The position numbers and the translations under genes are program-made. DNA of 64,000 nt, taken from NCBI GenBank assembly GCA_047495785.1, contig JBLDXI010000074.1, forward strand, positions 1,488,001 through 1,552,000, read 5' to 3'. Below, piece by piece: positions 3,001 to 58,800 of the stretch. The notes under the pieces were generated by a model that had not been told where the DNA came from, made no database searches, and saw nothing but the letters and a program-made list of their open reading frames with translations. Each line of letters starts with the position of its first letter. Positions within the stretch are counted from its first letter, which is position 1. The DNA is from Lepidodermella squamata (taxonomy: Eukaryota; Animalia; Gastrotricha).

Positions 3001-6000
3001 TTGAGTACCTAGCTAAATGTGCTCGAAAAGCTATTGAAGGATCGGGAACTGACGAGGAAACCTTGATCGAGGTGATTTGCGCACCCAGTTACGAGGACAT
3101 GCAGCTTCTCAAGGCCAAATACCAGCAACGTATGCTCGTATGACGTCCATGTTACTTTGTTAAAATCTCATTTTGCAGTCTACGATACTCCTCTGCAAAA
3201 AGACATTGAGGGGGATACAAGTGGAGCATTTAGAAAGCTGCTTGTTGCCCTGATCAATCGACCTAAGTCGCCTGAGAACATCGACGTGAAAGCAGCGAAA
3301 ACAGATGCGAAATCGCTGCACGACGCTATGGTGAAGGGTGGCGAAACGGCCTCAGATGAGCTGACTAAATTGCTGTCAAGCCGCGGCCGAGCTCAACTGC
3401 GACTCATTTTTGACACTTACGATGCAGACAATGACGTCGATCTCGAACCTGACATTAAGAAGCACTTCGACAGCGAGTTGGAAGCAGCCTTCGTTGCGAC
3501 AGTCCAAAGCATCCGTAATCGATTCAAATACTATGCCGGCCGCCTTGATTTCGCCATGGGAGGAAGTGGCACGAAGGACGAGATGCTCATTCGAATCATT
3601 GTCTCGCGTTGTGAACTCGATCTCGAAAATGTGAAAGATGAGTTTGAAAAGTCTTACAGCAAAACTCTGGCGAAAACAGTCGAGGATGAAACCTCTGGCG
3701 ATTACTGCAAATGTTTACTTTCCCTTATTAAGGGCAACAATGCCAACAAAATTTCGGTGGAAGAAGCCAGGAAACTTTTCAAACCTACTAAGCAGGAGGA
3801 ACACAAGGAGCCGAAGAAAGAAGAGGCTAAGAAAGAACCGGAAATTCCTCCACCGAAGCCAGATTCCAAAATGGCGCCAACGGTCCTCCCTGATCCTCAA
3901 TTTGACGTAAAGAAAGACTGCGAGGCGCTGATGAAGGCGATGAAAGGCCTGGGCACTGATGAGGACTCGCTAACTGCTGTTTTGACGAAGCGATCGTGGA
4001 AACAGAGGTCTGAAATCGAAGTCAAATACAAAGAAATCTACAAAAAGGTAAAAACCCGCTTGTCTCCCAAAATTCCCAACGTATTTGAGACATCTTGCTT
4101 TTATCAAGGAAATTAGTCAGGTAACATGAACATCAAGGCTGTTTTTTGATCCTCTAATCTAATGCTGATCTAATGCTAAATCTTTCAAATTCCACTTTAA
4201 GATTGATCTGTTCTAAACAATTTTATTTTATTAGGAGCTGGAGGCCGAGTTGAAAAGTGAAACCGAAGGCAACTATTTGATGGTGCTAACAGATCTCCTT
4301 AAGACACCCTATGAAGTTTCGGCCACCGCTTTGAATAAAGCGCTGAAAGGCAGCACGAATGAAGAGCTTCTAGTTGAAATAGTATGCAGCCAATCTTATG
4401 ACGATCTCCAGATGACACTTGGCAAATACGAAAATTGTTTGCTTACTTATTGTGCCATATGCTTTGATTCTTAACAAGTTGCTTTTCACAGTGTTTAAAA
4501 AGGCATTCATTAAGGATGTTGAAAGCGAGACAAATGGACAATTTCAGAAGTTAATGGCTGCGTTGATCAAGCGGCCGAAATCAGGTAAGGCTCCGGATCC
4601 GAAAGCTGCCAAAACGGACGCGAAAGCTCTGCATGACGAAATGCCGAAAAGCGTCGACAAGGGCTTGGATTCCTTTGTCAAGTTGCTCTCCACAAAAGGC
4701 CATACACAATTGAGGGCGGCATTCGAGGCCTACAAGGCCGATTACAAAACAGAAATCGAAGCAGACGTTCAGAAGCACTTCGGCAAGAGTCCCGATCTCC
4801 AAAAATCTCTCCTGGCAGTTGGTAAGTTCCGATCTTGCTCAAAATCCGATAAACATGTATATGTTCTCAGTCGGGATCATACGAAATAAGCCGGTGTACT
4901 TTGCGAAGAGATTTCAAGCTGCCATGGAAGGCGCTGGTACAAAAGATGAGGATTTGTCGCGCCTCTGTGTCACGCGTTGTGAAGTCGATCTAGGCACAAT
5001 CAAAGCCGAATACGAACGAATGTATAGCAAGCCACTTGTAAAAGCAGTTGAATCGGAGACTTCCGGCGATTACCAGAAAGCCCTTGTATCTCTTATCAAC
5101 GGAAACGCTCTGAGCAAAGAGAAGACTGTTACCAAAGGTTAGTCTTCACAACTATTTGCAGCATTTCCTCTATGAATCATTGCATTCTTTGGTTATAACA
5201 ATATTACAGCGGAAAATTATGTGGAGGAAGCTGAAAAAGTTAAACAAAACATTACCTCAGATGAGTGGCCTAGTTGGGAAAAAGAGGCAAATAAGCCTCA
5301 TGTCACTGGGGAAGAAGGGAATGATAAAGATGCCAGTGGTAAAGATACACAGAAAGAGGGGCAAGGTGGAGACGTAGAGATTGAAGGAGACGTGGTTGCA
5401 CCGACGGTTACTACCGAAGAAGAAAGCGATGAAGGGAAAGGTCAGAAGGATGGTGATAAAGATGATAACAAGAATGAAGTGGCCGAGGACGAGGGTGGCA
5501 CAGATGTAGGTAAGGAAGCTGAAAATAATGAAGAGTCAAAAGATGATGACAAGAAGGAAGAAGCCAAGGACGAACAGAAAGATGGCACTGATGATGGTAA
5601 GGAGACTGAAAACAAGGAAGAGTCGAAAGATGGTGATACCGAAGGAGCCAACCCTGAACGTGTGTCCGATGAAAAGCAAAAAGACGAAGAGGAAGGAGAA
5701 GGAGAAGGTAAAAAGGATGGTGATAAAGAGGGTGATAACGATGAGGACAAGAAAGATGAACAGCGGGAGGGTGAAGAAGATGTCCCAGCAGTGAAAAACG
5801 AGAACGAGGGCGATGCTGATAACGAAGATAAGCACGAAGAACCTGATGGCAATGAGAAAGACAAGGACAAAGATTCCAAGAAAGATGACAAAACTACAAC
5901 GAAAGACAGCGATAAAAAAGAGGACAAAGAGGGCAATAAACACAAAGATGGGGAAAAGGAGAAAGAGAAGGAGAAAGAGAAAGGGAAAGGGAAAGAAAAG

Positions 6001-39693: not shown

Positions 39694-41677
39694 CGTTAGG
39701 TTTAATCCTTCCAGACCTGAGACCTCGACACGAGGAGCTTAATCATTGTTAATCTGGGTTTGAAAAACAGCTCAGCTATTCTTGGGGATCTGAATTCAAT
39801 ATCTGAGTAGCTACAAGGAAGGAAAAGAAAAGAAAGAAAAACTAATTCTTTTTGATAGCGTAAACCACAAAACAAAGGTGATCTTCAGCTGTGCCTACGA
39901 TCAATCAATCTAGGAGCGCAGAGGTCACATTACATGCGTTGCTAGTAAACTAGACTAGCAGCTGATGTGCATTTATGAGTTATTTGGCTTGCTGTATCGT
40001 GTTTCAACTATCAATGCATGAGAGCTACTCATCGTCAGGGAATGCGGCATTAAATGAACTGGGAGGACGTCCTGAAGTTGCTGAAGAACATGCTATGCGT
40101 AACACCACTCAACATTTTTGCTCATTGAGGTACTCGATTTATCTCAATACTCCAAACTCCAAAGCTTCTTACTGCGGTATTTTCATATTTCCACCTGCTT
40201 ATGACCGGAAAACCTTGTGTGAAAATGAGCCCGAGAAACCAACAAAGGGCAAGAAGGATAAAGAGAAGGAAAAGGAGATCGTTGTTGTGGACGAACTCGA
40301 AATCGTTGGCTTTCAACTCGCGTTCAACTCTTTAAAAAATTGGATATTAAAGAAATCTTCGTTTATTTCAATTAACAATCGCATAGCCTCATATCTGCAC
40401 AATAATCGTTCAAAATATCAGACTACACGCAAGGCATCACGAGATGCCCAATATATACTTCATTGTATACACTATAATTTACGAAATAATTATGATAAAT
40501 ATTTGTTTTTATACAATAAATACATTAGAATTATTCGCAACAAATATTCGGTAGTGAGAGATAGAGAGTTAGAGCGAGAGAGATTTTGCATTCTGGACAA
40601 GAGACATCATTTTTTTCAGTCAATAAATTGCTCATCGACATGGCTTATACTGGGAAGACGTTGTGGAAAATCGGACGATGCGGAAGAGCGTTTTTAATGA
40701 AGACATTCACGTACATTCATATAAGTATTTGTGAAGCAATAGCGCCATTTTGGACCAAAGACGTGTGTGGCGGCGGCAGGTTTGTACGTATCAAGAGAAA
40801 GAAAACCTCCTCCACGTAGTATGATTCTGTTTTTGTGTAACCAACCATCAATCAGCAGTTTTATGCAGCAATAGCAACAACAACACGTAAAGATTGTCGG
40901 CATTACGATGCCACGATGTGATGAGAAACAACATAGAGAGAGAGAGAGAACATATGAACAGAGAGGCAGCGAGAAACAACAAACTGAAAACGTAAGATTT
41001 CCGGAGCGTTGCACCCGGCAGCGGCACATTTTGATGTCATCAATAAGTTTTTATGTACAGATTTCGAATCAATAAAATGGCGTTGTTAGTAGTAAAATTG
41101 TACATCATCATCGTAACAAAAAATAAGACGTCAAACAGAAAGAGATTAGGAACTTTCAAGCAGCATTACAGCCATCGCAAAATAAAGATTGATATTTTCT
41201 GTCATTTTCCATAATAACAATAATTTTTTAATAATAATAGTTGAAAAATTCATAGAAGAAGGAGCTTGGATGGTTTGCGACATTAGTTATTTTGTTTTTT
41301 TACAGCACCATGAATTTTGATATTGTAACGTTGGATTTTTTGCGTTTTTTCCTCTTCCTCTTCTTAGTTGCAGTCGCTTCTTCGATCGAGTCATGCAAAA
41401 TAGGTAGTAAAAGTAATGATAATAATTATAGCACATAACTAACATCGGGAAAACAAGTCATTCATTTCGTTCGTTCGTGTCTTGTCAATTGTATTTAGTT
41501 ATAATGATGTAATTCAGTATAGAGAGAGCGTTCAGGAAGTATAAAAACGAGGACGAGTGATTTGAGATTAAAACGTAGAGCGCAGAGAGATTCATCAAAG
41601 TCGTCGCCATCAGCAGTACTTATAGTGTGTCTTTGTTATATAAGGTAGGTAGATACTATATAGCAGTTAGTAGTAGT

Positions 41678-44600
41678 TTAGACTCGTTGATCACTGGTTC
41701 GAGTTGCGGCGGCCGCACTGTTATTGTTGCTGTTTGGCTTGCGTTGCCGGTGCTTGACCATCTGCAGCAGGATGAGTTTGCGGGTGCCGAACTTGTCGCC
41801 GAGCGCGGCGACGGTGCGCCCGTCCGGCGAGATCTTGATCGAGAACACGTCCGTGTGCGTGTTGAACCAGCACAGCTGCTTGCCGGTCGAGCGCCGCCAC
41901 AGCCGGATCGTGTGGTCGGACGAGCCGGAGGCGACGAGGTCGAGCGAGTCGTTGCTCGCCAGCGCCGTGCACCACACCTCGTCGGTGTGGCCCGTCAGCG
42001 TGTGCTCGCACGTCTCCGTCGCCAGGTCCCACACTTTGAGGGTGCAGTCGCTGGAGGCGGACACGAGGTAGCGCAGGTCGTTGTGCGAGATCGCCAGCGA
42101 GTTGACGGCGCTGAGGTGCGCGAACGACGCGCCGCCCACGCCGCCGCCCGCCTCGGGCGACGCCGCCGTCTGGTAGAGCTGGCGCAGCGCGCGCGCCAAC
42201 TGCACGTCCCAGATGATGATCTCGCCCTTGCGCGTGCCCGTCGCCGCCTCCACGTTCGAGATGATGACCGTGCACTCGGGGTACGCGTCGAACTCGAGCG
42301 AGTTCGCCTCGATGAACGTGCGCGACAGGTCGAACGACAGGTAGTGCGCGTTGCCGGTGAAGGGCGACAGGAAGCCGAGCACGGCGTAGCGGTTGTCGGG
42401 CGTGACGAGCGCGCTCACCAGCGAGTCCGCGTCGCCCACCGTCCAGCTCGTGCGCATCTCCTTCACCTGCTGGTTGCGCTGCACGTCCCACACGACGGCG
42501 GCCGTGCCTTCGCTCGAGGTCCGCGCCAGCAGTAGCTGGTCGCCGGCGCCGGAGCCGTCGCCGCCGCGCAGCAGCGCCGAGGCCGTGTAGTAGACGGGCG
42601 GCTGCGTGTGCAGCTGCCGGCCCGACGCGAAGTCCCACAGTTCGAACTTGCGGTAGGCGGGCGGGACGTCGGCGGGCAGGCTCGCGCCCTGGGCCATGTG
42701 CCCGGCGAGCATGGTCTCGTCGCAGCACAGGTGCAGGTCGCCGGAGCCGGTGTCGAGGCCGGCGACCGTGCGCAGCAGCTCGCCGCTCTGCATGTCCCAG
42801 ACCTGGGGCGGGCCCGTCGACGACCCGGTCACCACGTACCGGCCGTCCGACGTGAACAGGAAGCAGTCGACGCGCACCTCATCACTAAGGTACTGCGGCA
42901 TGCCGGAGAACTGCGATGCAATCGTTCCATAACCCTATTCAAAAGTATTCAACAGTAAGCCAAAAGGTTTATTTTTTGTTAGGTGATGGCAACTTACAGC
43001 TGCTGGCGGTAGGAACTGTTCGGTTTCGCGGACGAGTTCCCGCTTGTGGCTGGTCGACGTGAAGGCCGAGTAGGCGCCGAACGCCTGCGGCTGCGGCTGC
43101 ACCAGCGGCGCCGTTTGAACTTCTGTATCAGCTCGTAGTAGCACTTCGGTTTCAACAACTCCTGAAATGATCAAATCAGTTAATTAATCAAGAACCAGCA
43201 GAGTTTGATTGAGTAATAACTAAGTATTACTCAACAACTAATATCTAATTATGCATTGGCAACTACTGACTACGGGTTAGCATGCAGTAGACTAAAATAG
43301 TATAGTAGGGGTGAGTTCTAGTCTGCTAAGGGTAGTTACACAGTAGTTTACAATGACGTACTAGGCGGCGGCGGAGACGGAATTTGCGGCGGCGGGCAAA
43401 CAGGCGGCAAGAGAACTTGCTGCTCGAGTGTCGCTGCACATACGTCGTAGCAGTAGCAGTAGGTAGGTAGGTAGGTAGGGATGGCGAAATTATAAAAGCA
43501 GGCCACAAGGTTAACAGCGAACGGACAGGCGGAAAGCACAACGGGAATGGAGAAATAAAATAAAAAAATACGTTATATTAAAAGAAGGTTATATAGATAG
43601 GTCTATTACAATTATGATACAAGCGAAAGCCAGCAAAAATTGCTCAGAAATGTCGATTTTTCATCTAAAGGAAGTCTACTAGAAATCGACACCTCTCTGA
43701 GCGCATTTTTTGCTTTCCAAAAGCGAAAGCGGGTTGAAATGGACTACATATTATGATAGTAGAAAAAAGAACGAACCTCTAGCGAAAGCGGCCTGGACAA
43801 GTTGGTAGTTGGCGATGGGCTTGGGCGCCGTCACAGTGAGCACCTTGGCCGAGGATGGGCTCGAGAAGCACGGGCACCATCCGGGCTTGCAGCGGTAGAA
43901 CGCCCACAGCAAGGCCGAGAGGAGTAGCAGAAGCGCGAGGATGCAGCCAGCCGCGACTAGGCCGGCAATGGCGGCCGGCGTCAGCAAGGGTGACGTAGCA
44001 GCGATGGGCGCAATGATGGGCGCACCCAGTTCGATGCCGGCGCCACCGCCAGCCGCCGACTGCGCCAACAACAACGCGACGTTGTTCTCGATGAGGATGG
44101 TATCGTCGTCGGTGGTGAGCGCAGCCGGGATCCAGAACGGTGTCGACGCGACCTTGACATTGCCGTGTGCAGTGCCAGCGAGGCCGGCGCTCTCGAACGG
44201 CCGTGCGCCGTTGATGTATAAGCCGGCGATGATGCCGGTGAACGGCGCCGTCCAGTAGTCGTCCGGCCACGAGATCGACGCGTCGACGCCGGCCGGCGGG
44301 CGAGCGCCGATGACGACGTAGAGCGGCGGGTTGCGCCAGGCAGCGGCGAGGGCGGCGGCGGCCTCGCTCGACAGCAGCACGCTCGCGATCGGGTACAGGC
44401 CGTCGGCGCTCAGGTTCAGGTGCTTGCCGTCGCGCACCAGCGTCACGCCGTGGTACTGGCCGTCGGCGAACGACGGCAGGTCTTTCGGCGATCCGGCGAG
44501 CGTGTACTCGCGGCTGCCGATCGAAACAACAGCTACGGGTCGTTTGTCCTTCATGCGCAGTTCGACGACGACGGGCGTGGGGTCGCCGGGGCGGTAACCC

Positions 44601-47600
44601 GTGATGCGGGCGATGACGCCGTTCGGGTGGTACGTCATGAAGCCGACGGCGAGGCGGTCGACGCCGCTGCCGGACAACGGCGCGTCCGGCGTCTGCAGCT
44701 GGAAGGCGAGCATGCCGCCGACGGGGAACGTCGTGAAGTTGTAGCCGATCGCCGGTTCCTGGTCGCAGTTCGCTCCGACACGGCCGGTTGGCGAGCAGTC
44801 GCACGTGAAGGTGAGGCCGAGCGGCTTGCAGATGCCGCCGTTCTTGCACGAGTCCGGGCGACAGGCGACGCCAGAGGCGCATCCCGAGGCGAGGCCACGA
44901 GTCGATGCCAGCGATGAGCCGAGAGTCGACACCAACTGCTGCAAGTTGACGATGCGGCCGTTGGCGAACAACGAGGCGAAGCAGCCAGAGATGCCTGGCG
45001 GCAGGCGGACGTCCGATCCGGCGGTGAAGCGTTGCGCGACCTCGGCCGGCACGCCGCCCAGGTAAACGGTAGTCTGGAAGTTGACAACGCCAGACAGCGC
45101 GCGGACAGGGTACGCCAGCGAGGCGATTTCGTTGTCGTCGACGGAGGCGCTCACTTGCAGGGATGACCCGCCTGAGGCCGCTCCGAACACCAGGGTGACC
45201 GAGTGCCACTTGTCGTCCGCTAGCGATGCGACGTCCTCGGCGAGAGGCAGCGCACGAGACTGCGCGCCCACGCCCAGGTGCAGCCGGCCGTTGATGAGTT
45301 CGACGCGGGGCAGGGCCGTGGCCATGTTCGGCAGGTCGAAGGCGGCGACGAGGCCGTTCTGTTCGCGGGTGCGGAACGAAAAGGCGTACACCGAGCCGTC
45401 GCGCAGCCGGTCTTGCACGTCGACGAACGAGGTTGGCGTGAGCAGGGTGACTGGGAACAGCACGAAGTCCGTCGGGGGCCGCGGCTCGCCGACGTGGTCG
45501 ATGGAGCCGACTGGCGGTTTCACTGGTTCCTTACCGGTTCCGATGTCGAAGATGGTCCAGAATGGCGGGCGACCGGCGCCGTGCGGTTGGATGACAAAGC
45601 CCTGCAGCTGGCCGACGAAGCCGCCGTCCGGGCTGGCGGGGTCGCGGGGCGCCGCGATGATGACGCGCTCGATGTCGATGTAGAAGCCGTCCTCGCCGGC
45701 GATGGGGTCCGGGCGGATCTCGATGCCGTCGACGACGACGACGGTGTCCTTGCCGCGGCGGGTGATGCGCACGTCGTGCCACCGGTTGTCGGCGATGCGC
45801 GGCGCCGAGACGACGCGCGACGTGCGGAACCCGTCGGCGCCGAACACCACCTTCAGCAGGCCGTTCTCGAGCGAGGCGACGATGTAGTCGTCGGGGCTCG
45901 CCGTCGACTCGGTGTGGAAGAGCGGGCCGGTGGCGGAGGGCGTCTTCACGCGGAACGCGATGTCGTTGCGGTGCGTCGACTGCGACGGGCGGAGGACGAG
46001 CGTGGCGCTCGTCGTGCCGTTGAACGTGTAGATGGGCGCCGGGTCAGCGCACGAGGCGCCGGAGAAGGCGGTGGCGGAGCAGTCGCACACGTAGCGCCGC
46101 GCCGCCTCCGCCTGCGTCCACGAGTCGAAGCAGCGGCCGGCGCCGCAGATGCGCGCCGAGCACGCCGATTTCGGGTCGCGGCACCCCTCGGCCACGTTCG
46201 GCTCCGACTTGATGAGGGTGCGGAAGTCGAGTAGTTGCGAGTCGATCGTCAGCGACAGCACGCAGCCGACGAAGCCGCGGGCGGGCGCGCGGTGCGTGTA
46301 CAGCAGCCAGGGCAGGGCGTCGAAGTCAGCGGTGCCGCCGACGACGACGCGCCAGTCGCCGGACTGGCGCAGGAACGGCGCCTGTACGGACACGACCATC
46401 TCCTTCGAGTTGTCGCACGACGCCGAGACCCGCGAGTGCTGCAGCGACACTGTCGCCGCATGACGCTGGCCATCAGTCACATTCGAGCACAGCAGCAATC
46501 TGGAAATGACAACAACAATGGAATTAAAATATCGGCAAATAATCGAGAGGTGAAAGGGGTGATGAGAGCACAGTGAATGGATGGGGTGACTATTATTTTC
46601 AGGTCTTTCATTTCTTTCTCGGTGCTCGAAGTCTCGCAGTGCGCTAATTTTTATGAACGCGCTTGATCAAGTGCATTATCAAGTATTTGTCGCACCCCAT
46701 CGAGACTTTTAGCACATTTTCACGAAAAAATGTACAGGTGGTGAAGAATAGAAGGATGAAGGAGGAGTGATGGATGAAAAACGGTGATGATGAAAGGTGA
46801 AAGGTGGGGTTTTGTGTTTTTTGCAGGTACAGTGCCTATAATTATCAGGTCGACTAATTACCTTCGTCCGACTTCGCTACTGTAAGCGTTAAGCAAAACA
46901 ACATGAAGATAAACATAAAACAAACAACAGCGTCAGTTGAACACGCAAAAAACTAAAGGATTGCTACCGCACTCTACAGTGTAAAGCATCTCGAGGCTGC
47001 CTTTTGCGCTTACCTTTTAGCGCCGATGCCTGACCATACGAAATACAGGTGGCCGTCGAAGATTTCCAGCACGATGAAGTGGCGTTGTTGAGGCGCCTCG
47101 ACGAGCGACGTCACCGCCCGCCCGTTGCCGTTGCCGTTCGTCTTGTTGTTCGGCTCGGCGAACAGCAGCAGCGACTCGCGTTCCAGCGTCGAAAACGTCA
47201 CCGTGATGCTGTTGGCGCCGGCCGCCTGCGTGCCCAGCGGCCAATCAGCGTCGACTGTAATGCCCGAAGTCGGGCGAACAAACGTGACCGCGGGCACGGC
47301 TGGGTACGCCGGCGTCGTCACCGGGTTGTAGGCGATGACCTTGACCCACGGGTCGCGCGGCTCCTTGTAGTACAGGTCGAGGAGGTCGAGCGGCGCCGGC
47401 TGCGCGTCGCCGCGGATCACCGCCTCGTTGATGAAGCCGCGGAACTGTTCGCGGATGGACGCGTCCTGGCGCCATTCGGTCTCAGGCGCGCCGCCCAAGT
47501 GGTAAATCAAATCGTCGATCAGGTGATACGCGCTTGGCAGGTCCACTTCCTTAACCGGCTCGCCGTCGAGGAAAATGGACAGGCGGGACGTGTCGGCCTG

Positions 47601-50600
47601 GCGCGAGACGCTCAGCTGCAAGTGGTGCACGGCGTTGTCGTTGATAGGGCGCGGCGAGGCGTAGCGGAAGGCGGGCGCACGGCGGTCCGGGCCGCCGGCG
47701 ACCACCAGCTTGCCGGCCTCGAGACCGATCGACAGCGACTGGCGGCGTTGCGGGTCGGCCGTGCTCGGGTTCGAGTGTGTCAGCAGCCAGCCGTCGGACG
47801 CGCCCGTCTGGAACTTGAGGTCGAACTCGTCGCGGGTGTTGACACGCTTGTAGCTGGTCGGCGCCTGGCGCAGGTCGTATTCGACGAACCACCGGCCATC
47901 GGGCTGCAGTGGCGTGCGTGGCGGTTCGGTGGGCAGGCCGGTGTCGGGCTTGTCGATGGCGCGGATCAGCTCGTAGCGGGCCTTCCACAGCTCGAGCGTG
48001 GCGATGTCCATGTCGGCGTGTTTCGCCCACGAGCCGCGCGACTGCTCCGGCCGCCCCACGTAGAACGAGTAGGCGTTGGTGGTGGCGACGGCGGTGTCGG
48101 CGCGCGTCTTGGCCGCGAACTGCCGCTCGACTTTACGGCCGTTGATGTAGAGCGTGAGGCCGGTTTCGTTGTACCAGGAGACGTCGATCCAGTTCCACGA
48201 GTTGAGGCGCAGGCCGGGGCCCTCGACCGTCCACTCGTCGTGCTGCGAGCGCATCTTGGCAACGACCTTGCCGCCGCGGTAGAACACCTCGGCGGTGTCG
48301 GACGACAGCAGGTACATGCCGTCGTAGAGGCGCGTCGGCCGCACCAGCATGCGGATCGTGAAGCCGTTGACGCAGCCGTCCAGGTGCTGGCACGTGATGT
48401 TGTCGCCGATGCGCACGCCCTGCAGCGTGCCGTCCAGGTGCAGCGCCGTCTGACCGTCGGGGCGCGCCACGATGCGTGGGCCACCCTGCGTGTACACGAA
48501 GATGCGGTCGTGCTTGACGAGGTCGTTGTGCACCTCCTGGAACGGGAACACCTCCTTCTCGACGGCGCCGCGGTAGATCAGGTCGAACGTGAGGAGGGTC
48601 TCGCGGGGCGCGTGCCAGAACTGAACTTCGTCGAGGTAGGCGTGGGCGTACGGTTTGCCGGACGATTCGACGACATCGCGGCCGAGGAACACGCCGCCGG
48701 GTGTTGACGACGAGGTGGGCGCGAACCCGGCAATGCCAGTCGCCGCTTGCTTGTTCGGCTCGGCGACAAAGTCCTTCTCGGTGTTGTTGATGTGCAGGGA
48801 GAGGCCGCGGAGCGGGTGCCACGAGAAGTCGACGAGGTTCCACTGGTTGATGGAGAGGTCGTGCGTGGACACGGTCCAGATCTCGTCGCCGGCGGGCAGC
48901 GGGCGGCGCAGGCGGCCGACGAGTTTGCCGGCCTCGTACGTGAGCGCGTAGTCCTTGGTGGCGAGGAACGTGGAGCCGTTGCGCAGCTCGACCGGCTTCA
49001 CGTACAGCGTGACCATGAGGCCGTAGCGGCAGTGCGCGACGGAGACGGCGCAGCGCGACGACTTGATCGGGATCTGCGCGTACGAGTCGGCGCCGTCCAG
49101 GTACAGCGCCTGCTGGATGTAGCCCTGCCGCAGCTCGGCTGTTCGGTAGATGTACGTGTCGTACTTCGGGTGCTCGATCGACGTCCGGCTCGAGTCTTTG
49201 TAGTACTCCATCGGGAACGACAGCCACTCGAATTCATCTAAAAGAAGGGGAGAAACAAATAAAAAGAAATTAAAAGATGTACGGGCAATAAGAGGTCATC
49301 TGCTGCAATACAAATGATATCATATAGGTCAATTATACACCACGGCCGTCAATAAGAAAATATAGGTCATCATGCCGTCGTTTGGGATGAGAATCATAAT
49401 CTAATGTAATACAGGGTGGTTCACCATTCATTATACGTGACTACTCCTGGTATTTTACATAGACTGTACCTATTAAACTTGCTAGCTGATTGCAAGCGCT
49501 GCATTCTTCTTCTTCTAATTACACATACAAATATAGTAATAATCAGTTATTATTAATTCTATAATAAAAGATGAGTGATAAAATAAAATAAAAGACTTGA
49601 TGAGAAAATGGACAGTTGTGCTCCACAAAGTGCCGAGATAAACACTAGTTTAATTCTGAACCTAAAGCCTAATATAAATTGGTACTCGAGTTTTAACGAT
49701 CGAAACCGGAAACAGCCAAAAGCATTTCTAACCCAGCAGGTTTGATACCCTCATGATCATTTTGATGGAATGCGAAAACATTCATGGCAAGCGATTCCGA
49801 ATTAACGGAATATTTTTTTTCCCAACAGCCGCGTTCACTACGACCAGGCAAGGCCAGCCAACTCTGCGTTTAATAATTAATAATTAGTTGATTATTATTA
49901 TATTATTTGTACTCTGAGTAAATCTAATAGCCTAATAACCTAATAATGAATGTATAAAAATGACAGATAAAGAAGTGGTGACACGAATCGCAAGGTGCCA
50001 CAAATGAGAGGCCTCACGTGCGAGTCACAATCAAATTAAAATAACAGGAGATAAATCAATTATTTGTAATGATAATGATTATAGTAATACCAGCAAGCGG
50101 CAACTACTGATATGGCGGGCTTAAACAAACCTTTCATCTTTTGAGCGTCTAAAATTGTTGACGAAACAAATTGTAACGGAAACAAAAAAATTACAACACA
50201 CATCGCATAGTAGGTAAGAGAGGTGATTAGACAAAAATCGAGCCAGGTAAAACATTTTTTCTACGAAACTGAAATTTCGAAAAATTAGCTGAATGATTTT
50301 ACCTCTGATGATGTACTCGTGGGCGAGCAGGTAGTCACGTGTTGCGAACCAGAATTCCATCTCGTCGAAATTGGCCTTGGCGTAGTCGAAATTAACACCA
50401 GGCGAATCACCGACGTTTTGCTGGCCAATCAAAAATTTCGCATCAGCTAAACACAAAAACAAACATGAATGAATAATATGGACAAGATCATCGAATGAAT
50501 GATCTTACATCTAGCGCCTGGGCTGTTCGACTCGCGGCGGTCGGCGTGGGCGATGAGGCGCCGGTTCAGGAACACGTCGAGGCCCTTCTCCGGGTGCCAC

Positions 50601-53600
50601 GAGAACTCGAAAAAGTACCAGCGATCGCGGCGGATCATGTCGCGCGGGATCTCCACCTGCCACTTGTACGCCGTCGACGAGTCCTGGCCGGCGCGACCGC
50701 CCGCCTCCGACCCGCCGGCGCCACCCGCACCGCTGTTCGAGCCGTCGTTGCGGCCCGACCGCTGGTTGAAGATCACGTACAGCTTCTGGTCACGCTGGAA
50801 GAACTGGATGCCGTCGTTGGGCCCGGTCGACAGCAGGTAGCGCGGCTTGTCAAAGTCGATGCCCGAGTCGAAGTTGACGAGCATCGAAACGAAAACGCCG
50901 TGGCGGCACAGCGTGAGGTTCGTGAGGCACGACCGCTGCGCCGCACCCACGTTCGCCGCCTCCATCCACTGCTTGTCGCCATTCAGACGCACCGACCAGT
51001 CGACCTTGCCCGCCGGCGAGTGCGTCGGGTTGCCGTAAAGGTTGATGTGCAGGCTGGGGTGGACGAGGCGCAGCTCGCCGTTCCGCTCCGTGTAGTCCAT
51101 GTCGAGCACGTAGAACGGCGGCAGGCCGCGCAGGATGTAGTCGTGCGCGACGAGCCACTCGCGCTCGGCGTACCAGTACTCGAGCTCGTCGACGTCGAGG
51201 TCGGCCGGGGCGCCGCGTTCCGCCGCCGTCGTCGAGCACCGCCCGACGTAGAAGCGGTGCAGCTGCTCGGACGCGAGTTGCGAGTCGATCTTGCCGACGT
51301 GCCGCGTCGCGTTCGCCTCGGGCACGTGCGCCACCAGCGCGTTGTCGACGTAGACGCGCAGGCCGCGCTCCAGTTGCCACGTCAGCTCGACGTAGTGCCA
51401 GCCGGACGTCGACGACGGCACCGAGTCGCCGTTCGACGCGCCCGCCAGCAGCCGCGAGTCCAGATCAGCCTGCCACACGTGCGTCGACGTCGCCACTTCG
51501 GCCTTGAGGCGAGCGGCGTCCCTGACTAGGCGAATTCCGTTGAGACCGGTGTCGAGGTAGCACGCCGGGGTTGCGAGTTGCGAGTTCACCTGCGGCACCC
51601 GCAGCCAGAAGGCGACGAGGGCGCCGTGGTGGCAGTAGTCGAGGTTGCCGAGGCATTTCGACCGGTGAAGACCGAGATCGACGAGGGCGCCGTTGCCGCG
51701 CAGACGCACGGCCTGGCGAGACCGGCCCTTGATGAGTGGCGACTCGGTCTCGGAACCGGGCACGAGGCCGATGGCGAGTTGCGAGTGAGCGACACGCATC
51801 GGCGCCGACCCACCACCTCGGGCTCCGTCACGCTCCACTTCGTCGAACGACACGTCGTAGTGCTGCGGCCGGCGGCGCTGGATGAAATCAACTGCGAGCA
51901 GGGTCTCTCGAGAGGCAGTCCATAACGAAACTTCGTCCAGCAAACCATTCAACGAGGCAGCTGCCTGAGGCGACCCAGCGACGTACAAGTGCGGTTCAGT
52001 TGAGGCAGGCGCCAGGCGATCGGTAGATTCGATCGAGCGGTCCGAGGTTGATGCCGAAATTTCGCCGTTGTTCACGAGAATTGACAGCACGAGGTTCTTT
52101 TCGTCGCGCTTCCGCAGCGACACCTCGACGAGGCACCACGAGCCGAGCGGCATGTCCGTTGTCGTCCACGTCTCGTACGCCTCGTACGACCGCGGGTCAG
52201 TTCCGATGAGCACGTTCGCGACAGCACGCAGCCGCTGGCCGACCAGCCACACCTGGATGCCGTAAGGACCGGCTAGCAACAGTGGCACAGGCGCCGCTGC
52301 CTTCGAGTTCAGTTGCACCCACAGCGATCCCATGACGCCGTACGGGCAAGCGTCGACGCTCGTGTTCAGTCGAGTGAAGCAGGCCAGGGCGGCCGGGGCA
52401 GGCGAAACGGCAACGTACTGCTTCGAGTTGGCCGGCAGCGAGAGCGACATGCCGAACTTGGCGTCGCTCGAGAACGAGGCGGCGAGTTGTCCAGCGGCGG
52501 TTCCAGCCAGCACGGCGCGCACATCAGGCGAGTCGAGCAGCTTCGACGACCCGGCACCGGGGGCGAAGCGGTCGAGCGGCAGACGGACCCGCGAGATGGC
52601 CTGTTCGCGGATCTGGTCCGCCGTCCTCGCCTCGGCGTAGAAGTGCAGTTCGTCGACGCGGATGAGGCCCTTGGGCTCGAGCGGGTGGCCCTCGGGCAGG
52701 GCGCCGGCGCCTCCGATGTGGTACTCGATGTTGCGGCCGATGTAGAAGTACTTGTAGCGGAGGGAGGTCGAGTCGCGGGACGTCTCGGCCGGTTCGAAGG
52801 CTCGCCGCGCCGACTCGGCAACCGCCCGCCCGTCTACGTACATCGTGAGTTCGCGCGTGTCCCACACAGCGGCGACGTGGTACCAGCGCTCGGGCCTCAC
52901 GCCCCGGAACGCCGCTTTCCACAACTCGCCACTCGGCGTGCGGAACGTGAACTGCAGCGAGTGTTGAACGAGTTCGAGCGCGACACCGTGCGACACAGCC
53001 GTGTGGCCGCCGTTGGTGAGGTACACGCCATCAGAGCCAACCGTGTCCTTGAACCACAGCCAAAGACCCAGGGTGTAGCCGCGTTCGCATTTCGACAGGT
53101 CGCCGAAGCACTCCTGGCGGTGCGAGGCGCCGGACACGACCAGCGTCTGTTTCGAGCAGTCGAGTTCGAGCGAGCGGCGGAGGACGCCCGGCTGCAGGCT
53201 GGGCGCGCCGTAGACGCGCGTGTCGAGCCCGCCGACGTTGGCGATCGACTCGTGCTCGATGGCGTCCATGGCGAGGTGGTAGTGCGGCGCCTTGTTCTCG
53301 CCGCACGCCGCCGCGCGCGCCTTGCACTTGAAGTCGTCGAGCGAGGCGGTGGCGCTCAGCTTCGTCACGCAGTAGTAGAGCACGTTGCGGCAGATGTCGG
53401 GCTGGCGGTCGCAGATCTCGACGGCCGACTCGTTGAGGCCGTGCGACGAGCGGAGGCGCGCGCGCCGCCAGTTGCAGTCGCCACAGCCGGCGAAGAACAC
53501 GACGTTGGCGACGTCGCCGACGAAGTCGCGCTGGGCGCGCGGGGCCGTCGCGAGCAGGCGGGTGCCGCGCGGCACGCCGCCGACGTAGACCGGGGTGGAG

Positions 53601-54040
53601 CCGGCGCCGAAGCGCAGGTCGGCGGCCTGCAGGGTGCGCGACACGGAGTGGCCGGCGACCTTGAGCGAGACCTCGAGGCGGTTGCGCGACACCTCGACCT
53701 CGCGCCACGCGTTGTTGGCGACGGCGGCCGGGTGCACGATGGTGAGCTCCTGCGGCGGCGCGGAGAAGCCGTCGGCTGTCTTGGCGGCGATGCGCATCTG
53801 CAGCGTGAGTTGCCGGTCGTTGATGCTCAGCATGAGGTAGTCGCCCTTGCCGTCGTCCGTGTACACGAGCACGGCGTTTTGCTCGCGCGTGCGGAAGTCG
53901 AACGAGAGGCGCGCCTGCGAACACGCGTCCCACGGCTCGTACGCCGCGAACTGGTCGGCGACGCCGCGGAACTGCAGCGCGCCAACACTTGTTGTCATTA
54001 TGATGATTGTTGTTGTTAATAGTAGTGGTAATTTCAGCAT
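41678..54040 (-). CDS. Alpha-neurexin-like type I membrane protein with six inserted pentraxin/LamG3-like repeats and an intracellular WD40 beta-propeller (~3,363 aa)
   Basis: Exons 54040-50509, 50446-50303, 49237-47014, 46499-43777, 43433-43362, 43161-42998, 42910-41678. All introns are GT-AG and phase-compatible; total 10,092 nt is divisible by 3. Signal peptide; neurexin-like motifs (WDACSQARLSFDFRT..YTDDG; YDLRQAP..DEFDLKFQT; FIVLEIFDGHLYF; RYVCDCSATAFSGASC; CRPDSCKNGGIC..FTCDC; DRLAVGFMT); TM at ~43895-43975; WD repeats (YLVSASSDCTLKVWD, TLTGHTDEVWC, ASGSSDHTIRLW). Confidence 0.85.
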
Positions 54041-54899
54041 TTTTTCGATGAATCAATGAAAGACGACGACGACGTTAAATCAATCGGTCAATCGATGCGT
54101 AATAATAACGGTAATAACGGTAATAATTAATAAATTAAGCTGCTGCTGATGGTGTTGATGGCGAGCGCTGGTTACGCTTTTGTGCCGACGCCGATGTAAG
54201 GGTCACGTAAAATCGGCAAATTTTATACGTAACATCCTATACAAATAAAAACAAGAAGATTCTATAAAAAATCTGAAATATTGAGAGATGAACTATTTAA
54301 CGTGCCCCAACTGGCGGACCTCCCCTATGACGACAATTGACCCTAAAAAAATAATGCTGGATAACAAGATTATTACACGCTCATTTGCTGTTGCGCCTTT
54401 TGTCTCACACAGGTGTATGTATGAATATTTTAACAAAACCAACCTAATGAATTATCATGTTGTACGTTGATGTAAAAAATACGACGTCTTGTATGATGCG
54501 TGTACAACAACAACAAAATTGAGAACATGTTATTATACGCACCCGCGCGGTGTATACTTAGATGATGTTAAGCGATATAAATACATACGTGTGTTACTGC
54601 AGAATCAAGACTCAAGTCGTCTAAAACATGTGAATACAATATATGCTTATTTATGAAAATGCGCATCAAAATGATCGTTTGCGCTATTAAATCTCTGCTA
54701 CTGCTACTGTTGAAGAAAATAGAACGACAGCGTGCGGTTGGTTGATTGAAAAAACCGGCGCGCGGGCCCTCGTGAAAGAAAGAAAGCAAGAAAGAAAGAG
54801 ACATCGTAGAGGGCTCGGCGTGCGAGCTGTCGGCGCAACAACACGTTCTGTTGTTGATTGTTTTATTACTACTTACAACAACTATTTGTCGCAATCTCT

Positions 54900-55861
54900 C
54901 TGTGCTGCGTCACAGACTACAAGCGTCGTCGTCGTCGGCGGCAACAAACCAGATGACCACCATTGCCACCACCAATGTCTCATGAAATTGATACTTGATG
55001 ATATACTAGATGAAGGGTACCTACCTACCTACCTACCTAGACTAAGCATGCATATAGCTATTAACAACCACTACTACAACCAGTAGTAGTAGTAGTAGTA
55101 ATAGTGAGCTCATGATATCTCTCTCTCTCTCTTTCTCTGTACATCAGGTGTGGGTTACCTGTGAGATGATGGATAGCAGCAGCAGCTCAGTATATCGATG
55201 ACAAACGGTTCGGGCCACACACGCATGCGCAGTAGCAGTAGTAACAACAAAGGTGCACACGGCTTGTTGTAGCAATTTTTGCGCCGGCTCGCTGTTTTGG
55301 CGCCGCTGTGACTGACTGACTGACTGACTGAGTCACCGAGACTACTGCGTGCGTACAGGTAAAACACACACGTACACGCAGCAGCAGTCAACTAAAAGTT
55401 ATACACACCACCGTGAACGCAACAAACCAACCAGGCACAACTGCTAGTAGTAGTAGTAGTAGTAGTAGTCGTCGTAGTCGCAGTGTTGGAAAGTCCGTTC
55501 GTGGTGGGCCAGTGTCGCCAAAACACAACAACAACAACAGCGGCAGCGGCAAAACAACAAAGTATCGACTCGCAGCACGAGCCCGCTCATCATCATCGTC
55601 GTAATAGATATACCTATATAAAATACCTATAATATAAGATAAGATACCAGGCACCAGACACCACCAATGTAACGGCGGCGGTGCAAAAAAGCACACGCGG
55701 GTGTCAACACGAGCGAGCGAGCAGGCACGTGTCAAAAAATACACGCCTTGCAGTGTCTCACTGCGCTTTGTTGTTGTTGTTGATGTTGACGGCCATCGTG
55801 TCTGGTGTCCCGGCGACGACTGGCCGCACAAAAAAAATCGACAGGAACCCGCGGCATTGCA

Positions 55862-55893
<32 letters not shown>

Positions 55894-58800
55894 TCAAGGT
55901 GCTAAAAATAAACACGAGTGGGCGCGCGTGATTAATCGATAGGCACCCCCGCTGCCGGCCTACGTTATTTACGCGCCGCCGCCGTACCACTCCGTTCAAT
56001 CTATCAGGCCAAATTAGCCCGAGCCGGCAAAAAAGCAGCAGCAGCAGCAGTGGCCAGCCGGGGCCTATTGCCTCGATTGCCTGATGCAAGACTCTCTCTT
56101 GCCCGCCCGCTCTCGCTCGCTCTGTGTGTTTATTGCTTTGCGCCGAGCGGTTTTCGTTCGTTCGTTCGTTAGGTTAGCGATTTATCGACGACGGCGCCAC
56201 AGAAAGAAAGAGCGAGATAGAGGAGCTACGTAGGTAGGTAAGTATTTTTACGATGAAGAAGCGCTCATACATAGAGCCGGACAGACCTCAACAAGCACAG
56301 TGTTATTGTTGTTTTGCTAATACAAGACTATAAAAACACGAACGAATACGAAGAAGAAGAAAACGTAGGAGCTTGATCTATAGGAGGAGGATTGCGAATG
56401 CCCCTTAACTTATCTACCTGTAATGTAGTATAATAGTGGTTGGTAGTAGCGCATTCGTAGTAGTAATACTAATAATACAGATAGGCGGTTGTTGCAATGG
56501 GCGCTGCTGCTGCTGCTGCTTAGGATGCTGCTTCGGATGCAAAACACTGCGGCTAACGTATTATTGCTGCTGCTGTTTTTGTTGTTATAATACGAATAAA
56601 AGGTGGGTATTACGGCATTACGCGCCGATTCCAAACACGCCGCCCGTCCGATGGCTGCTGCTGGTCGCTCGCTATAGCTGACTGAGGCAGAGAGCCTAGC
56701 CTAGCCTAGCCTAGCTCTCGCTTCGCTGCTCCGCGTTTAGGTACCTACCTATATACCTACACACCGAGCTTCAGAAGCCACGAAGGCGAAGAAGAAGCTG
56801 AGAAGAAGCGATTCGCAACGCTACTACTACTACTACTATCAGTATACTAATACATAGAAACTATAAATAGCAAATGGGCAATGGAGTTTTTCGGTGGGCC
56901 GTTCATTGGTTTGCGCGCTCGCTCTTTGTTTCGCCCAACCGCTGCTGCTGCTGCTGCTGCCGTGTCTCTTCGGCGGCGGCGGCGGCGGCGTAAAATAACG
57001 ACGATAACACTGCAACATAACAATTATTATATCGGCAGAGATAGAAGCACCAGGTATAATAATATCATTGCATGTGTACACCGGCGAAATGACTACTATT
57101 ACTTGTGTAGTAGTAGTAATAGTACGGCTACGACTACTAGTACTACTACTACTACTACTACTGCTGCTGGAATAACCGAAGCAGATACCTATATGTATAC
57201 GATAGTGAAGGCATGTGATGATGATGATGATGACTGCTAGGGACGAACCACGCTAGAGAGCGAGCGAGCGCGTTTTTGGTCATGCGCGCAGGTTTTTGTT
57301 TGCGGGGCGCGGCTCGGCGCCGAGCGAAAGAGAGCGCATCGTCGCAGTCGCGCAGTCGCATCGTATTAGCGCGCGTAATGTCGCCGCATTACCGGCCGCT
57401 TTCGCTCGCTCGCTCGTACCTACGTACGTTGGTTGGTTCGTTGGTTCGTTCGTACGCTCGTATGTTTGCCAACCCGGCCGAGCGACCGAGCGACCGACCC
57501 AGCTAGCTAGACCGACCGGCAGATAGCCGCCGAACACAAGGCCTATATAGCGGTGCGGAGCGGTGCCGACCAGCTTGAACGGTCGACTGACTGCGCTGGA
57601 GCAGGTTGTGTTCTCGTGTGGATTCTTGACAGGGCTTTAAACACATGCTGATGACGATGATAAGATGATCATGATGATTATTATTACTATTGTCGCCTGT
57701 TATAGCTGCCGCGCGTACTACCACGTTAAACATCATCATCTATCATCACCGCCCTATATCCGCCCGCCCATTACGTACCCGCAAATACCAGCCTGGCAGC
57801 CTACAAGCAGCCTACCTGATGGGCCTCTACATCCATACATACATACCTACATACATACATGCATATGTTGTATAACCGTAAAAAGAGTTGGTAAGTGATG
57901 AAAAAACGCACCGACCGCCGCGATCAGTGTTCGGAAACTCACACAGCTCACACCTACACACAAGCTCGCGCACCTGCGCAACAAACAAATTTTTCAACAG
58001 CAGCTCGCAGCAGACGCAACAATCAATCGGTGATGCGTGCCGGTGCGCGGGACGCGTAAAAATGGATACACTTGCCGCAATATATATATCTAGCAATATT
58101 GCCGGCGATTCGAGGAGGGTGGCGATGAAAAACAGCAATCGGCGCAAATTGTTTTCATCTCAGGCACCAACCACCACCACCATAAAGCTGTTGTTGTTGT
58201 TGTTGTTGTTTTGCGGCGCAATATCTCGCAGAAGCGCAGAAATAAGCAAGGCAAAAATGCAGTACGCAACAATCAATCGGCAGGCATACATACGAACCGT
58301 GGTGATTAATCTCGTCGCCCAACATTTATTCTATCAATTGCGAGATGAATCAATGGCGAAAGGTCTCCAACTGCTCGATTGGACATCAACACAAGATCCC
58401 CCACGAGATGCGAATGAGCCGATGTAACGCTTCTTATCGCGAAATGCATTTAAAACGAATAATCGAATCATTCAAACCATGAAAAACTTAGCAGACATTG
58501 ATGAATGGAATTGTACAAATTTTGTAGAATCCACTTGGAAAACTTGGGGCATACATAATACGGCACAAAGCTTTGTAGCAGAAATTTATGGAGAATATGA
58601 CGTGAATATTATGCTTCGATCCAACTTTGGTCTCGCTATGGATCCTATTATTTTCACCCAAAAGGCAAGACTTGAGAAACAATCTACTGTTAGCGAATAT
58701 TGGACCTATAACAATTGGATGGCAAGTTGACGTGACTAATTAGACCGAAGCCCAGGTACTAGAAGATATCGGCCAGACGGGTTGACTAACAAGCTAGTTA

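Follow-up and report, generated by a model that had tools for sequence, protein, structure and literature searches.

A 64,000-nt stretch of the Lepidodermella squamata genome (positions 1,488,001–1,552,000 of contig JBLDXI010000074.1, assembly GCA_047495785.1; hereafter, the window) carries on its minus strand, between positions 54040 and 41678, a gene that we identify with high confidence as an orthologue of PHRED-1 (Pharynx regeneration defective-1): a single-pass type I membrane protein with a LamG/EGF ectodomain, a Pro-rich linker and a cytoplasmic WD40 β-propeller. The original prediction for this locus described an alpha-neurexin-type receptor spliced in frame to an intracellular WD40 exon. 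Its core, that a single gene combines the neurexin-like ectodomain, the transmembrane (TM) helix and the WD40 exon, is upheld by the same layout in annelid, mollusc and flatworm orthologues, and comparison with these relatives supports a fused receptor that carries its own intracellular propeller. The architecture was also claimed to be unrecognized among characterized proteins; it had already been published in 2017, as PHRED-1 of the planarian Schmidtea mediterranea (Adler and Sanchez Alvarado, bioRxiv 10.1101/131789).

The gene model comprises seven exons on the minus strand (54040 to 41678; Table 1) and encodes a protein of 3371 aa that starts with a signal peptide and is free of internal stops; all six introns are GT–AG and the frame stays open across all exons. 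An ectodomain of ~2800 aa, a long series of LamG (LNS) domains and one or more EGF domains, is followed by the TM helix (model residues 2805–2837, the sole hydrophobic peak of its kind besides the signal peptide) and by a cytoplasmic tail of ~530 aa, in which a low-complexity, Pro-rich linker of ~150 aa leads to the propeller and the C-terminus reads ...TSDQRV. From the signal peptide, the single TM helix and positive-inside logic, the LamG/EGF chain is expected to be extracellular and the propeller cytoplasmic. Pfam places LamG families in exons 1 (Laminin_G_2, 4e-26; Laminin_G_3, 1e-21), 3 and 4, and EGF in exon 4 (43778–46498: Laminin_G_2, 9e-42; Laminin_G_1, 6e-24; EGF). Two donors of exon 3, at 47013 and 47047, give a stop-free model, and the former (AAAAG/GTAAGC), not the latter, has the GTAAG consensus. 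The GC content is 61–69% in the exons vs 29–41% in the introns; even the short exon 5 (65%) is set off from its flanking introns (35–38%).

Planarian PHRED-1 has 2536 aa, with a signal sequence, 6 LamG and 9 EGF domains, a TM helix and, on the intracellular side, three WD40 repeats, all counted by SMART (bioRxiv 10.1101/131789). A 3-kb cDNA clone spans its LamG, EGF, TM and WD40 regions, an 8-kb transcript was obtained by 5' rapid amplification of cDNA ends (5'RACE), and an antibody was raised and used in a Western blot (bioRxiv 10.1101/131789). The protein is expressed in planarian muscle, its RNA interference (RNAi) results in thick, disordered muscle fibres and in pharynx and gut regeneration defects, and the domain combination was stated to occur only in lophotrochozoans, including Schistosoma, Lottia, Octopus and Capitella (bioRxiv 10.1101/131789). 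In the literature searched, six later papers mention PHRED-1, none in its title or abstract. The window protein displays the anatomy that defines PHRED-1—a LamG/EGF ectodomain behind a signal peptide, one TM helix, and a C-terminal propeller with full-length orthology—and, like the planarian protein, its C-terminus is strongly conserved. It differs in being longer (3371 aa vs 2536 aa), in appearing richer in LamG and poorer in EGF domains (one weak Pfam EGF match in the exons scanned), and in that its tail is modeled as a whole propeller with probably eight blades, where the planarian study lists three WD40 repeats.

The evidence for the join between receptor and propeller comes from relatives of the gene. 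In a profile-free exhaustive search with the WD40 exon, most of the matches were multi-WD proteins, and four proteins matched the exon whole, in one stretch: a 398-aa open reading frame (ORF; P0001) on the metagenome contig L002, a 397-aa metagenome ORF (P0262), the Owenia fusiformis protein CAH1790210.1 (P0170; 3736 aa, match at 3354–3730) and the Aplysia californica protein XP_012941838.1, named 'neurexin-1' (P0248; 1764 aa, match at 1386–1760). According to Pfam, the propeller is preceded by ten LamG stretches in the Owenia protein and by five in the Aplysia protein. Searches limited to the non-canonical blades returned 31 proteins of 1302–4148 aa from molluscs (Biomphalaria, Lymnaea, Mytilus, Ostrea, Mya, Pecten and others, about 25 besides Aplysia), from Owenia, and from the flatworms Mesocestoides, Schistosoma and Spirometra. 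Of the 31, 30 have Pfam matches to both LamG and WD40 families, the exception being P0301 (Plakobranchus), a partial model with LamG only. Residues 26–1040 of the Owenia protein align to exon 1 at 53980–50552 (E = 6e-121), therefore the orthology spans the whole gene; its residues 1062–1102 align to exon 2 with 48% identity. The motif WAFYxCKPG next to the TM helix (LLWAFYRCKPGWC in the window) is common to Owenia, Aplysia, Biomphalaria and bivalves.

Three further sequences bear on the join. The Logan contig L003 (5722 nt, from a public run) contains one uninterrupted ORF of 1802 aa with LamG, the TM motif and WD40, and, as this ORF lacks introns, the contig has the form of a spliced mRNA. 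The frame of the metagenome ORF P0003 extends beyond the propeller by ~135 aa on the upstream side and contains no start codon in that part. In Helobdella robusta (KB095959.1; L001:4114-12253), HELRODRAFT_109714 is annotated as a stand-alone WD40 protein of 407 aa; a tblastn search with the tail model located pieces for LamG, EGF and the TM-proximal part in the unannotated 6 kb directly upstream, with order and strand preserved. HELRODRAFT_109714 is thus probably the C-terminal portion of a PHRED-1-type gene, cut off from the rest by a split annotation.

The original prediction joined the TM exon to the WD40 exon by three GT–AG introns of phases 1, 1 and 0. Read directly on the minus strand, the signals are as described and the spliced tail is in frame without an internal stop: the intron 43776–43434 has the donor AG/GTTCGT and the acceptor tgtgcAG/, the intron 43361–43162 the donor GTACGT and the acceptor tcatttcAG/, and the third intron the donor GTAAGT at 42997. 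Exon 5 (43433–43362) could be skipped without a frame break because both of its flanking introns are of phase 1, making it a candidate cassette exon. For the third intron, the predicted donor is retained, and the predicted acceptor is probably not the main one. The latter (tgcatcgcAG/) ends at 42911, whereas an alternative in-frame acceptor 24 nt upstream (gaatAG/) ends at 42935 and gives a 63-nt intron; either keeps the frame.

The contig L002, which derives from a close relative and begins inside the second linker exon, is informative here: its propeller is 89% identical to that of the window in amino-acid sequence and its codons are much AT-richer. At the downstream acceptor, cgcAG in the window is cgcAA in L002. 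The upstream acceptor is kept in both (gaatAG/ in the window, tttatAG/ in L002) and is followed in both by the in-frame peptide GYGT(I/M)ASQFSGMPQY. The alignment with the Aplysia orthologue begins exactly at 42934. Since L002 has lost cgcAG but keeps the upstream AG and the peptide, and since Aplysia aligns from 42934, the last intron is most likely 42997–42935 (63 nt), with the last exon starting at 42934; the acceptor at 42911 may be retained as a minor site. The last 20 codons of exon 6 (TTSHKREMVRETEQLLPQMA in L002 vs STSHKRELVRETEQFLPPAA in the window) differ at 4/2/11 nucleotides by codon position and end in a conserved GTAAGT donor, and the first 80 codons of exon 7 differ at 7/2/51, most of the changes being at third positions. 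Judged from this two-species comparison, the linker is under purifying selection.

The propeller was investigated with an alignment (A1) of 21 sequences from Mollusca, Annelida and Platyhelminthes. The whole propeller is common to all 21 aligned family members, with 52 invariant columns that include the non-canonical blades and with 34–43% identity between the window sequence and the named members. AlphaFold2, run on this alignment, gave a confident all-beta model with ~30 strands (mean pLDDT 83.3, pTM 0.82). Foldseek searches of the PDB with this model matched eight-bladed propellers (Tako8, Rsa4/Notchless, ODA16, Fbw7) with TMq values of 0.58–0.65 (probability 1.0) and seven-bladed propellers (WDR5, PkwA, WRAP-T) with values of 0.46–0.52; because the former are higher, eight blades are probable. 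On the basis of the model, the tail is thus probably a complete propeller with eight blades, only two or three of them canonical WD40-like, a slight refinement of the planarian description. Its solved relatives, both by sequence and by fold, were only generic WD40 propellers, with no specific functional lead among them. Rsa4/Notchless, ODA16/DAW1 and Fbw7 (eight-bladed) and WDR5 and PkwA (seven-bladed) resemble the window protein in fold and in its two canonical WD40 repeats, but the sequence identity is 14–22%, the sequence matches are confined to those two repeats, and none of these generic propellers is tethered to a single-pass adhesion receptor.

Neurexins are characterized by six LNS and three EGF domains and by a ~55-aa cytoplasmic tail that ends in a PDZ-binding motif. 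The membrane-proximal ectodomain of the window protein has its best PDB matches in neurexin-1alpha (3qcw; 1.4e-70 to 5.7e-59), and, as in alpha-neurexin, LamG/LNS and EGF domains alternate in a type I membrane protein. However, its ectodomain comprises at least nine LamG-type stretches in three large exons (ten in the Owenia orthologue) instead of six LNS domains, the fixed L-E-L cassette with six LNS and three EGF domains is absent, and the short PDZ-type tail is replaced by ~530 aa with a predicted folded propeller and the end ...TSDQRV. The ectodomain relationship contained in the term alpha-neurexin-type (1.4e-70) is therefore retained and the neurexin definition is not, as both the domain count and the tail depart from it: strictly defined, the window protein is no neurexin. 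Among the mollusc members of the family, P0248, P0296, P0297, P0301 and P0302 are named 'neurexin-1', 'neurexin-1-like', 'Neurexin-1a' or 'neurexin-1-alpha'; the complete ones carry the WD40 tail, and the naming could mislead surveys of neurexins.

Three other explanations of the locus have to be weighed. The locus might yield two products, namely a receptor that usually ends soon after the TM helix, through intron retention or read-through, and a free cytoplasmic WD40 protein of ~400 aa, as an additional or even the main product of the WD40 exon, initiated internally at the conserved Met in FSGMPQY. Stop codons do lie right after the donors 43776 and 42997 (43753–43751 and 42937–42935), the propeller is preceded by a Met in the window and in L002 alike, the Helobdella protein is annotated as standing alone, and a sequencing run that may be RNA (X1) has depth only over the 3' end of the WD40 exon. 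Against this stand several observations: the last exon lies only 63–87 nt from the preceding donor, which leaves no room for a promoter (as the original prediction noted); the peptide upstream of the Met is conserved as coding in L002 together with the previous exon and its donor; the frame of P0003 stays open upstream of the propeller (~135 aa) and lacks a start codon there; the Helobdella annotation looks split, with LamG and TM pieces in order just upstream; and a poly(A)-primed library yields just such 3'-end coverage. Moreover, fused full-length models, the intron-free ORF of L003 and the planarian cDNA all show the join. The conserved coding capacity of the linker and the missing promoter room argue against a free WD40 protein and a short receptor as the main products, although either may occur as a minor one, and we consider this explanation improbable. 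Still more remote is the view that two independent neighbouring genes happen to be joined in frame by chance. Direct RNA evidence for this genome is missing from X1 and from the second run, X2, but the frame survives three introns in a row, three phyla have the domain order and the TM motif in common, and the linker is under purifying selection, so that such a coincidence is extremely improbable.

The remaining explanation, of which the original prediction proposed a form, is a recent, lineage-specific capture of the WD40 exon from an NWD/NACHT-WD or TEP1-like gene by a true alpha-neurexin gene. A weak Pfam match to the TEP-1 C-terminal beta-propeller (43.7 bits, cut-off 32, residues 324–375) and the high scores of the two canonical repeats vs many multi-WD proteins are in its favor, and canonical WD repeats are indeed what the window protein has in common with NWD1/NWD2 and TEP1. 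Outside the family, however, only these two repeats match (query residues about 255–385, profile positions about 260–370), in many stretches per protein, and an NWD/TEP1 origin of the propeller was ruled out on this ground. The window protein contains a single propeller rather than an array and has neither a whole-domain match to these proteins nor an NACHT/NTPase domain; Pfam found no NACHT domain in the four large exons, which make up ~96% of the model. The whole propeller, blades that match nothing else included, has 52 columns invariant across Mollusca, Annelida and Platyhelminthes, and the LamG stretches of the ectodomain outnumber the six LNS domains of alpha-neurexin. Exon capture from NACHT-WD proteins is thus contradicted by the whole propeller being shared by three phyla, and a recent capture is hardly credible; as the propeller is common to these phyla, the fusion predates the split of Mollusca, Annelida and Platyhelminthes.

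Several points weigh against the assignment to PHRED-1 and the complete fused gene model. X1 has depth only at 41400–41946, plus scraps, and contains no splice joints, and X2 is genomic DNA of another haplotype, introns included; no junction-spanning RNA reads are found among the two, and the exact splice sites are inferred. The join consequently rests on the comparison with relatives. The GC content at third codon positions (GC3) of the small linker exons, 0.61–0.64, is below that of the large exons (0.88–0.94). The flatworm sequences compared are those of Schistosoma, Mesocestoides and Spirometra (P0288–P0290), not PHRED-1 of Schmidtea, and their propellers have 34–36% identity to that of the window. 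Lastly, the function is carried over from one planarian study, and the role of the WD40 tail is putative in every species.

The domains and the planarian results suggest a likely mode of action for the receptor–propeller fusion. In neurexin, laminin and agrin, LamG domains bind matrix or partners. The LamG/EGF ectodomain would likewise bind matrix or a partner on a neighbouring cell, and the propeller would be a fixed docking platform for cytoplasmic partners, recruiting them to the contact site. The likely setting, by orthology with planarian PHRED-1, would be the attachment and organization of muscle cells. A cluster of Cys residues stands right after the TM helix (43880–43860, YRCKPGWCPCF), in a pattern conserved across the family. 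These residues, just inside the membrane (CKPGWCPC), are a possible lipid anchor, as a candidate site of S-palmitoylation.

Table 1. Predicted features of the PHRED-1-type gene, with positions in the window; the start of exon 7 is the most likely one
Feature	Position	Strand	Remarks
Exon 1: start ATG at 54040, signal peptide MLKLPLLLTTTIIIMTTSVGA, then LamG/ConA-like domains	50509..54040	-	1177 codons + 1 nt
Exon 2: 144 nt, completes LamG-like domain	50303..50446	-	Splice sites read, frame kept in full model
Exon 3: LamG domains	47014..49237	-	Pfam Laminin_G_2 4.8e-14, Laminin_G_3 8e-12
Exon 4: LamG repeats (four Pfam stretches), EGF, stalk, TM helix, first cytoplasmic residues	43777..46499	-	
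TM helix, then conserved WAFYRCKPGWCPC juxtamembrane motif	43889..43987	-	Kyte-Doolittle maximum 2.75
Exon 5: 72-nt Pro-rich linker	43362..43433	-	Splice sites read, open in frame
Exon 6: 164-nt linker, end ...SHKRELVRETEQFLPPAA	42998..43161	-	
Exon 7: WD40 beta-propeller, short basic tail, TAA stop 41680-41678	41678..42934	-	Pfam WD40 2e-21
3' untranslated region, extends below 41400	41400..41677	-	X1 contig

The X1 contig that covers the 3' untranslated region has a depth of 36 at 41400–41849 and reaches 141 nt beyond the compared stretch. At the other end of the gene, the sequence upstream of the start codon (54041–56200) contains the simple repeats (CT)n near 55880, (TAC)n/(CTA)n near 55450 and (GTCA)n near 55320, as well as GC-rich patches that might be 5' untranslated exons or a promoter. 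The codon composition of the gene is also distinctive. Its GC3 is 0.86–0.94 in the large exons (41678–54040) vs 0.45 in the ORF of L002 (L002:130-1326), and 51 of the first 80 third positions of the last exon differ between the two despite the 89% amino-acid identity. Across the genes of the window, GC3 ranges from ~0.45–0.5 at 1–8 kb to 0.88–0.95 in the PHRED-1-type gene and at 31.5–32.9 kb; the compositional shift is strong and gene-specific.

For the biology of the family, the gene adds little: the name PHRED-1 and a functional study in planarians date from 2017, and public databases contain dozens of predicted orthologues, many of them mislabelled 'neurexin-1' or, as in Helobdella, split into two genes. 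A reading of the sequence alone nevertheless rebuilt an unusual receptor–propeller fusion correctly, with one splice site corrected here. The known range of PHRED-1 comprises Mollusca, Annelida and Platyhelminthes, and in the propeller tree the window sequence stands on a long, unresolved branch outside the sampled molluscs and neodermatan flatworms. We put forward only tentatively, as a doubtful possibility, that the window animal, whose branch would lie outside the sampled annelids as well, represents a lineage without an earlier PHRED-1 report and so widens the range of the family, with a tail that is a complete eight-bladed propeller and possibly a palmitoylated anchor. Together, the alignment and the AlphaFold2 model point to invariant surface residues that are candidates for mutation; if this tentative view is true, the family-specific blades and the Cys-rich anchor would offer concrete surfaces for probing the intracellular function of PHRED-1 proteins.

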